Below are positions 60,965 to 63,102 of a DNA stretch of 64,000 nt, piece after piece. The position numbers and the translations under genes are program-made. How positions within the stretch are numbered: position 1 is the first letter of the stretch; each line of letters opens with the position of its first letter. The notes below the pieces were generated by a model, which was not told the origin of the DNA, ran no database searches, and saw only the letters and a program-made list of their open reading frames with translations. Source of the stretch: Dimorphilus gyrociliatus (Eukaryota; Animalia; Annelida); assembly GCA_904063045.1 (NCBI GenBank), contig CAJFCJ010000015.1:248001-312000 (forward strand). Reading direction: 5' to 3'.

Positions 60965-63102
60965 ATGGAATTTCCGGCAAAGTCGAATGTAAAACACTGG
61001 ATACAGACGTTAAATGATATAAGAGAATATAAAGAGTACATTAAAGCAGGATCATTAGAAATAGATGGTGAAACTTTAACAATATCAAAACTCTATGCAA
61101 TGACCTTCAAACCTAGTTTTGAATGTTCAATTACGGAGAAGTGCTGTGATAAAATGAAAAAGAATTATGAGTTTTTCACTGATTTATTAAAATCTGGAAA
61201 AGTTGTCTACGGTGCAAATACCGGTTATGGTGGTAGTGCTAATGTTCGATACGAGAGCGTTGCTAAAGTTCAGGAATATTTGGTTAGTCATCTGAAAGCT
61301 GGTTTTGGTAGAAAAGCGCCTACAGAATTGATTCGAGGTATATTTGAAATTACACAAATAATTAAAAGTTCTATTAAATTACTTCTTCTTTTAGGTGTTA
61401 TGGTTCAAAGGGCTAATAGTCTTTCTAAGGCACGTTCTGCTGTCCGCGAAGAGGTTCCGTTACTATTATTAGAAATGGTACGCAAAGACATCGTTCCTAT
61501 AGTTCCTCTCAGAGGAACTGTTTCCGCAAGCGGAGATTTAATGCCAAGTTCATATATTGCTGCTGCAATGATGAATATGAAAGGATCAAGAGTTCTACAC
61601 AAAGGTGTTGAAATGGAGGCCAGCGAAGCATTCCAGTTAGCTTCTGTTAAACCTGTAGAGTTCCACGCGAAAGAAGCTTTGGCTGTTGTTAATTCATCTT
61701 CATTTGCCGCTTCATTAGGCAGTTGCATGTTGTTCGAAGCCAACGTTTGTGCCATACTTGTACAAATATGCACAGCATTAATAGCCGAATCTTTGGAAGG
61801 TCATTTAGAATCTTTCCACTCACTTTTGCATGAATCAATGCCTCATCCTGGCCAATTGGAGTGTGCTGCTAATTTATCATCACTTCTGAATAATTCTAAA
61901 ATGTCAATAACTGATCTAGAAATGAGAAGGGAGGATTCCAAAGGACTTAAGCAGGTATATCTTATTAAAGAATGATTTTTACAATCTGGTTAATATAGAT
62001 CTTTTCTAATAGGATCGTTATGCTTTAAGAACATCACCGCAGTGGGTAGCACCAGTACTAGATACACTATTAAGATCAAGAGAAAAACTGGAAATAGAAC
62101 TAAATAGTTCAAACGACAATCCTTTAATTGATGACGAAAGAGGTGTTGTAATTCACGGTGGAAACTTTCAAGGAATATCTGTATCTATGGGTTTGGATCA
62201 CGCACGACAAGCAATTCAATTGTGTGGAAAATTGCTACACGGTCAATTTCAAGAACTCGTGAATGGTTCAATGAATGGCAATCTTACCCCAAATTTATGT
62301 GGTTCGGATTATAATGTAGATATGGGATTCAAGGTTTTTTATTAAATTATTTATTGAATATAAAATAAATTAATAATCAATTTTGTCTTTGACATTCTTA
62401 CAATCAGGGTTGCGATACTGCAATGGCAGCGTATTGCTCTGAACTTGACGGCTTAGCAAATCCAGTTACAAATCATGTATTGAGTGCCGAACTCCATAAT
62501 CAAGCCATTAACTCAATGGGATTTTTGTCGGCTCGAAAACTTGAAGAATCAATAGAAGTTCTAAAACAAATGATTGTACAGAGCCTAGTAGCAACCTGTC
62601 AGGCAATTGACTTGAGATATCTTAAAAATTATGCTGAGGCCATCATTAAGACAATTTTAAATGAGCACAAACTAAACGAAAAGACATTCTACAGAGTATG
62701 CCCTTGGTGGGTGTTGGTTTTTTCACCTCCAGAAGCTGAAGTGAGACTGAAAGAGATATCTCCTTTCATGAATGGCCTAAGATTTAAAGACTTTTTAAGT
62801 GAGTTTGAAGAAGTGGCTAAGCCCGTTTTGGAGAGTATAAAAAATGGAACACTTGTTGATCGAATATCCGATGAATTAGGATATGGTAACATGCATATAA
62901 TTTCTTTATTATATAATTTTGGTTATAATTTATTAATTTCATTTTAGGTACAAAAAAGGTTTATCGATTTCTTCGTCAAGAACTTAATATTAAATTTAAT
63001 ATAGGAGCAAATAGTCTTGATAAAGATATGGAAAAAGTTCTTTCTTGTATCAATTCTCAAAAAATACTCGACCTACTCCAAGAAATTGAGTTATACAGTT
63101 AA
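60965..63102 (+). CDS. PAL: MIO-dependent aromatic amino acid ammonia-lyase/aminomutase of PAL/TAL type (not histidase), 5 exons, 628 aa
   Basis: Exons 60965-61337, 61395-61954, 62013-62333, 62408-62885, 62948-63102 (1887 nt). VYGANTGYGG lid Tyr, GTVSASGDL MIO triad, [93 protein letters not shown]. Confidence 0.95.

Follow-up and report, generated by a model that had tools for sequence, protein, structure and literature searches.

Ammonia-lyases that act on phenylalanine (phenylalanine ammonia-lyase, PAL) or tyrosine (tyrosine ammonia-lyase, TAL) are known from plants, fungi and some bacteria. A gene with the signatures of these enzymes was noticed at positions 60965-63102 of a stretch of 64,000 nucleotides from the annelid Dimorphilus gyrociliatus (contig CAJFCJ010000015.1, positions 248,001 to 312,000 of the forward strand), which is called the window below. 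The locus raised the question of whether an animal possesses such an enzyme as a gene of its own, what the enzyme would do and how the animal came by it. Our analysis indicated that this is a genuine and transcribed D. gyrociliatus gene, single-copy among the matches listed, for a eukaryote-type aromatic ammonia-lyase of the PAL/TAL type with the 4-methylideneimidazole-5-one (MIO) cofactor. The probability of this reading, in which the activity is a predicted one, was put at about 0.8; catalysis, substrate, product and physiological role were all deduced from sequence and modelled fold.

Five coding exons on the forward strand (60965-61337, 61395-61954, 62013-62333, 62408-62885 and 62948-63102) joined into 1887 nt, which corresponded to 628 codons and a TAA stop. 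The four introns in the coding sequence (CDS) were 57, 58, 74 and 62 nt long, every one with GT..AG ends. The translation was 100% identical over all 628 residues to DgyrCDS10259 (P0218 in our set; GenBank/UniProt), which is annotated on a 1.43-Mb scaffold, and the published annotation and the exon-derived gene model thus agreed. Public sequencing runs were examined over 59000-64000, and all four CDS junctions were found spliced in contigs from three RNA-derived runs of two studies (X1 belongs to a study of 2017, X3 and X5 to one of 2020). An intron of 421 nt in the 5' untranslated region (UTR) was also spliced in the X1 and X3 contigs. The original prediction, made from the DNA letters alone, had described an intact 628-residue MIO enzyme with these four introns and had placed their sizes in the class of the host genes. 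The splicing and the identity to DgyrCDS10259 bore out the gene structure, and the intron sizes (57-74 nt) fell in the host class, the median intron of the 73.8-Mb D. gyrociliatus genome being 66 bp (PMC7854359). The features of the gene were as follows.

60316..60529, forward strand: non-coding first exon (5'UTR), beginning at 60316 or earlier, since an X3 RNA contig covered 60316-60527 and then continued at 60949.
60530..60950, forward strand: 5'UTR intron, 421 nt, GT..AG; joint 60527>60949 (cut +2) in the X1 and X3 contigs.
60951..61337, forward strand: exon 2, with the ATG at 60965 and residues 1-124 plus 1 nt; Tyr82 and His109-Leu110 (61289-61294).
61338..61394, forward strand: CDS intron 1, 57 nt, phase 1, in frame and without stops; removed in RNA.
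61395..61954, forward strand: exon 3, with the MIO triad Ala169-Ser170-Gly171 (61526-61534) and Asn224-Ser-Ser.
61955..62012, forward strand: CDS intron 2, 58 nt, phase 0; RNA junction.
62013..62333, forward strand: exon 4, with Tyr314, Arg317, Asn347, Asn362-Phe363 and Lys418.
62334..62407, forward strand: CDS intron 3, 74 nt, phase 0; RNA junction.
62408..62885, forward strand: exon 5, with Glu446, Asn449, Gln450 and the onset of the C-terminal helical domain.
62886..62947, forward strand: CDS intron 4, 62 nt, phase 1, in the codon of Gly578; shared at this codon and phase with Owenia, Lingula and Dreissena.
62948..63329, forward strand: last exon, with TAA at 63100-63102 and a 3'UTR to at least 63329.

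CDS intron 1 was considered as coding sequence since it is stop-free and in frame, and phmmer matched a fungal PAL insertion across it. This possibility was rejected because the RNA contigs spliced the intron out and the spliced junction aligned better: its removal restored ELIRGVMVQRANSL, which aligned with LEVVRGAMTIRVNSL of fungal PAL. Retention of the intron would add 19 residues (IFEITQIIKSSIKLLLLLG-like), and these were spliced out in all RNA contigs examined. Separately, the X5 RNA-derived contig had T for G at 61784, which gave Ala255Ser next to the nearly invariant Glu256 and was probably a strain polymorphism.

Profile searches revealed PF00221 (Lyase_aromatic) as the sole Pfam domain of the protein, matched on three large exon pieces (E 4.4e-63, 9.9e-31 and 4.8e-17) over profile positions 1-450 of 466. 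The best NCBIfam model was phe_am_lyase (TIGR01226), with 500.5 bits over profile positions 22-517 of 680, whereas the model hutH (TIGR01225) of histidine ammonia-lyase (HAL) gave 284.3 bits against its cut-off of 539.15. The aminomutase and bacterial TAL models scored 235-343 bits, far under their cut-offs. Among PDB sequences, the N-terminal half was best matched by Rhodosporidium PAL (1.4e-45), with HAL at about 1e-23 to 1e-27, and the C-terminal piece by plant PAL (1.8e-23). An AlphaFold2 model built from 90 homologues had a predicted local distance difference test score (pLDDT) of 95.3 and a predicted TM-score (pTM) of 0.95. The model overlaid the structures of parsley PAL, Sorghum PAL, Taxus phenylalanine aminomutase (PAM) and yeast PAL over about 650-670 columns with TM-scores (TMq) of 0.81-0.88, and parsley PAL (6f6t) with 0.86 over about 666 columns. 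A eukaryotic architecture with a C-terminal helical domain is predicted because of these long superpositions; this shielding domain was formed in the model by helices 509-627 and was shorter than in plants.

In an alignment of 90 sequences, the residues A169-S170-G171, Tyr82, Asn224, Tyr314, Arg317, Asn347, Asn362-Phe363, Lys418, Glu446, Asn449 and Gln450 occupied invariant or nearly invariant columns. The HAL rows carried Met, Ser, Gln and Glu where the Dimorphilus protein has Lys418, Glu446, Asn449 and Gln450. All the PAL/TAL motifs quoted in the original prediction, CQAIDLR included, were present in the translation, and the bacterial HAL rows differed at the positions of these motifs. HAL does belong to the PF00221 superfamily and uses the MIO cofactor, but it has Ser at the column of the selectivity switch and lies across a 100/100 branch of the tree described below. 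Membership in HAL was ruled out by the hutH score, by the four substituted positions and by this branch, and the earlier choice of the PAL/TAL type over the histidase type was upheld by sequence profiles, modelled fold and phylogeny. By sequence and model, the protein is a PAL-type MIO enzyme and no histidase.

The selectivity switch of the protein is His109-Leu110. The first switch position is Phe in the plant rows, His in most of the fungal rows and Ser in the HAL rows, and the Phe-Leu pair of the Phe-specific PALs is not present in the Dimorphilus protein. As a rule drawn from bacterial, fungal and plant enzymes, His at this position goes with the acceptance of tyrosine. The switch therefore points to the acceptance of tyrosine, and p-coumarate from L-Tyr would be the most likely product because the His109-Leu110 pair is that of tyrosine ammonia-lyases and of the phenylalanine/tyrosine ammonia-lyases (PTALs) of grasses. 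In the proposed mechanism, Ala169-Ser170-Gly171 would cyclise autocatalytically into the electrophilic MIO group, and Arg317 together with Tyr314 would hold the carboxylate of the substrate in a site lined by Asn224, Asn347, Gln450 and Glu446. Tyr82 of the inner loop would abstract the beta-proton, and ammonia would leave to give a trans-arylacrylate, most likely p-coumarate and possibly also cinnamate from L-Phe. The deamination of Phe and Tyr, or a mutase activity, had been suggested in the original prediction, and such activities are still read only from sequence and model.

Comparison with the known enzymes placed the protein closest to the eukaryotic forms. With plant PAL (Petroselinum crispum, 6f6t/1w27) and grass PTAL, it had in common the whole-length fold including the C-terminal helical domain, about 33% identity, and the Ala-Ser-Gly triad of MIO with the Tyr, Arg, Asn, Gln, Glu and Lys residues of the active site; the His-Leu switch was common to grass PTAL and other Tyr-accepting enzymes. 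It was about 90 residues shorter than plant PAL, left the last 160 positions of the PAL hidden Markov model (HMM) unmatched and had Asn-Ser-Ser instead of Asn-Gly-Thr. Unlike the hosts of plant PAL, its animal host is not known to have a phenylpropanoid pathway. Fungal PAL/TAL (Rhodosporidium toruloides, 1y2m/1t6j) was the best N-terminal PDB match and has His at the switch, and fungi formed the sister clade in the maximum-likelihood (ML) tree. In contrast to the His-Leu pair of Dimorphilus, most fungal rows have His-Gln, and the animal clade lay outside the chytrids plus Dikarya, with no introns in common. The TAL of Rhodobacter sphaeroides (2o6y) had the same MIO chemistry and a sequence match of E 2.6e-18, but the bacterial enzyme is about 520 residues long, is without the eukaryotic C-terminal domain and is far more distant in sequence. 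Its switch, according to published work on this enzyme, is also His-Leu.

Several observations weighed against a plain PAL/TAL reading. The TIGR01226 score of 500.5 was just below the curated cut-off of 519.15, with only part of the profile matched. Some relatives from the same animal clade scored above this cut-off (P0003 546.6, P0004 522.9, P0160 529.6) and the Owenia protein scored below it (501.6). The rule that links His to tyrosine comes from bacterial, fungal and plant enzymes, which lie outside the lophotrochozoan clade to which the Dimorphilus protein belongs, and among the paralogues of this clade His, Leu, Phe and Val all occurred at the switch. Among its 68 assignable members, 39 had His, 17 had Leu and 6 had Phe. 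The Asn-Gly-Thr motif after the MIO-contacting Asn was kept in 115 of the 119 sequences outside the clade, HAL included, whereas D. gyrociliatus has Asn224-Ser225-Ser226 (61637-61645) in its place. Within the clade, Asn-[Ala/Ser]-x replaced this motif in 69 of the 77 readable members; the other 8, including those of the venerid and mactrid bivalves examined, kept it. This change adjoins the MIO-contacting Asn, so the chemistry or the substrate could differ from that of the classical PAL/TAL enzymes. The protein would thus be PAL/TAL-like by sequence and modelled fold, and it departs from a strict PAL equivalog in two features, narrowly in the HMM score and in the lack of the Phe-Leu switch.

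Relatives of the protein were collected with an exhaustive phmmer search (1.84 billion representatives) and a profile search (5.8 billion clusters). About 85 sequences scored well above the fungal and plant PALs, and all the named ones were lophotrochozoan: annelids (Owenia, Capitella, Helobdella, Ridgeia, Lamellibrachia and Dimorphilus), one brachiopod (Lingula) and bivalves (Dreissena, Mytilus, Mya, Ruditapes, Mercenaria, Mactra and Pinctada). Their database names were automatic ones, such as 'phenylalanine ammonia-lyase 2-like', 'PAL' or 'uncharacterized', just as the original prediction had allowed that invertebrate homologues might already be on record. The remaining members came from metagenome, ENA or Logan contigs, so the clade may extend over more taxa than the named members show. 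The homologues from Lingula, Mytilus coruscus, Dreissena, Owenia, Ridgeia, Capitella and Helobdella were 40-52% identical to the Dimorphilus protein. The clade was monophyletic in a FastTree tree of 228 sequences (Shimodaira-Hasegawa support, SH, 100) and in an IQ-TREE LG+C20 tree of 58 sequences (100/100), and it lay inside the PAL-type group, with the HAL-like rows across a 100/100 branch. In several lophotrochozoan species, multiple paralogues carried Leu, Phe or Val at the switch position, as against the one His-Leu copy of Dimorphilus among the matches listed; the switch variation suggests, as far as sequences can, that substrates diversified in the multi-copy species.

The introns gave a measure of the age of the gene. 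The last intron interrupted the same Gly codon (…G|T(K/S)K…) in phase 1, at alignment column 978, in Dimorphilus, Owenia, Lingula and Dreissena. Because the codon and phase are common to three phyla, the gene and its last intron were present in the ancestor of annelids, brachiopods and molluscs, in keeping with the long residence claimed earlier. The other three CDS introns of Dimorphilus were not present in the genes of Owenia, Lingula and Dreissena, and several members of the clade, P0003, P0183, P0228 and that of Capitella, had a single exon. The first three of these, P0003 (L001-L003), P0228 (L006) and P0183 (L007), were found on gene-sparse eukaryotic contigs of metagenome-type assemblies. 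The neighbour on contig L001 of P0003 was a PDZ protein. On contig L007, P0183 was flanked by collagen and CTHRC1, and because of these neighbours the contig is taken to come from an animal. P0228 and P0229 branched at the base of the clade.

Where the animal clade came from was examined against the other PAL-type groups. Cluster look-ups identified such clades in the chytrids Chytriomyces and Nowakowskiella, the hemimastigote Spironema and the protist Papus. A further group consisted of CoA-ligase-PAL fusion proteins, one of them labelled Omnitrophota. With a HAL-like/bacterial root, the ML tree was (plants,((protists+Omnitrophota fusions),(animals,(chytrids,(two unnamed,Dikarya))))), with support of 92/79 for animals plus fungi and 99/96 for fungi; the backbone was moderately supported. 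In approximately unbiased (AU) tests, the grouping of animals with Dikarya (p=0.027) or with chytrids (p=0.028) was disfavoured, and an origin within either was rejected; neither animals plus plants (p=0.155) nor animals plus protists/Omnitrophota (p=0.115) was rejected. A recent bacterial origin was also rejected: among 185,579 species genomes, no closer prokaryotic relative exceeded 36% identity, and this only over the core, while the Omnitrophota fusions grouped with protists and away from the animals. The large proteins P0002, P0020, P0023 and P0035 were 1265-2535 residues long, one being labelled as a metagenome-assembled genome (MAG) of Candidatus Omnitrophota, and they grouped with the protist PALs. 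In P0002 and P0020, an acyl-CoA ligase domain was fused to one or two full-length PAL domains of the eukaryotic type. The four could be a bacterial fusion of 4-coumarate-CoA ligase (4CL) and PAL, or eukaryotic DNA binned into MAGs.

Two histories of the animal clade were weighed. The first, to which we give an even chance, is that a stem lophotrochozoan acquired the gene once, long ago, by horizontal transfer from an unsampled eukaryote, stem-fungal or protist; introns would then have been gained, and the gene lost from lineages including gastropods and cephalopods. The named members came only from Annelida, Brachiopoda and Bivalvia although the collection searched holds many other animal genomes, and PAL-type genes are patchy in eukaryotes at large (chytrids, Spironema, Papus). 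Several members of the clade are single-exon genes, no intron position and phase common to the animal genes and three fungal PAL genes (chytrid and basidiomycete) was found, and one gain would be more parsimonious than at least 10 losses. Acquisition is less easily reconciled with the tree, in which no donor lineage was identified among the sampled groups, the animals are nested in none of them (the AU tests disfavoured both placements inside fungi), and the topology mirrors the species tree with animals as sister to fungi. The second history, which we consider possible but less probable, is vertical descent: the opisthokont ancestor would have had a PAL-type gene that fungi and lophotrochozoans retained and other lineages lost repeatedly. 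The grouping of animals with monophyletic fungi and the rejection of placements inside fungi speak for it; yet the support for this grouping is moderate, the placements with plants and with protists/Omnitrophota stand, all the remaining sampled lineages of animals and holozoans must have lost the gene, and the intron positions differ from those of the chytrid and basidiomycete genes. Present data do not separate ancient transfer from vertical retention, as the original prediction had also said and as still holds after the AU tests, and the parsimony of gains and losses slightly favours a single old transfer.

A different possibility concerned the chemistry, namely that the D. gyrociliatus enzyme is a 2,3-aminomutase giving beta-tyrosine or beta-phenylalanine and no lyase. 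The Taxus PAM structures fitted the model about as well as PAL (TMq 0.85-0.88), and NCBI names the Lamellibrachia homologues in this sense; sequence also does not reliably distinguish lyases from mutases of the MIO family. The mutases known so far are uncommon, however, each having arisen from lyases in a particular lineage, and the aminomutase models scored far below their cut-offs (TIGR04473 343.5 vs 1250, TIGR04475 249.1 vs 800, TIGR03832 237.5 vs 501), which makes a mutase improbable here.

The sequences of this clade were thus already public under automatic labels and amount to an animal subfamily, so far unrecognised, of a known type of enzyme. In the literature, the classic phylogenetic study (Emiliani et al. 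2009, PMC2657906) recorded PAL in land plants and Dikarya alone, and the passages searched of a 2022 survey of MIO enzymes (PMC9002059) made no mention of animal PALs. No paper on an animal or lophotrochozoan PAL was found in the open literature, subscription journals being outside the search. What is gained here is recognition and an evolutionary framing, since the database entries existed before. An active enzyme would mean that these animals produce their own cinnamate or coumarate, which would be an unrecognised branch of animal aromatic metabolism. A broader proposal, which we regard as speculative and rather unlikely, is that annelids, brachiopods and bivalves possess their own entry step to arylacrylates (p-coumarate/cinnamate), old and maintained by selection, with paralogues adapted to different aromatic substrates by the switch residue and by a change, particular to the clade, of the otherwise invariant Asn-Gly-Thr motif, and that the products feed an undescribed animal pathway. 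If so, possible uses would include 4-hydroxybenzoate for the ubiquinone ring, defence compounds of the bromophenol type, and phenolics that cross-link tubes, byssus or shell matrix. The clade also bears on the spread of PAL-type genes among eukaryotes, and if the gene were an opisthokont heirloom, as it could be, the accepted picture of PAL arising only in land plants and Dikarya would change. Dimorphilus is a tractable animal for such questions, with a small genome, culturability and a single copy among the matches listed.

The genomic setting of the lyase was that of an ordinary animal gene. Its neighbours in the window were genes for a hexokinase, a rhodopsin-family G-protein-coupled receptor (7tm_1), a zinc-type dehydrogenase, an aldo-keto reductase, a calmodulin-like protein and an Acyl_transf_3 protein, and the GC content was uniform at about 30% across the window, lyase region included. 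In the DNA run X2, from which the assembly may derive, one contig of 23 kb contained 59000-64000 unspliced and was colinear across the lyase and its neighbour; this colinearity with animal neighbours therefore argues against contamination. Contamination or mis-assembly with fungal, plant or protist DNA, which the original prediction had doubted on account of the introns, was rejected as having practically no chance, since the lyase has the GC content (about 30%) and intron sizes of its surroundings (median 66 bp in the genome paper, PMC7854359), lies together with its neighbour in the 23-kb DNA contig, is spliced in transcripts from two studies (2017 and 2020), has an orthologue beside the same neighbour in a related species and has one intron in common with other lophotrochozoan genomes, while nothing was found in favour of contamination. 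Three of these neighbours lay as follows.

51430-51669, forward strand: calmodulin-like EF-hand gene, upstream of the Acyl_transf_3 gene.
52908-54710, reverse strand: aldo-keto reductase gene, upstream of the Acyl_transf_3 gene.
56541..60037, reverse strand: Acyl_transf_3-family gene, divergent from the lyase; its 5' end is about 280 bp from the first exon of the lyase.

No evidence of a functional link of the aldo-keto reductase or calmodulin-like genes to the lyase was found. A related species (Logan assembly, L004) had an orthologue of the lyase with introns at matching places and the same divergent Acyl_transf_3 neighbour. The ratio dN/dS between the two lyases was 0.11-0.14, with dS saturated, and the amino acid identity was 78% in exon 3 of the lyase vs 35% in an exon of the Acyl_transf_3 neighbour. 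By these sequence comparisons the lyase is kept under purifying selection, and the status of a pseudogene is excluded for the locus. A conserved biosynthetic cluster was considered and rejected: only the close relative L004 retained the linkage to Acyl_transf_3, and within 3 kb of the Owenia, Lingula, Dreissena and Capitella genes no such linkage was seen, a weak negative given flanks so short. In D. gyrociliatus, about 280 bp separate the divergent Acyl_transf_3 gene (5' end near 60037) from the lyase (60316 or earlier), and the two genes may share a bidirectional promoter. In L004, a short open reading frame at 2550-2714, about 2 kb upstream of the lyase orthologue, had a weak match to PF00221 and may be the remnant of a tandem copy of the lyase.

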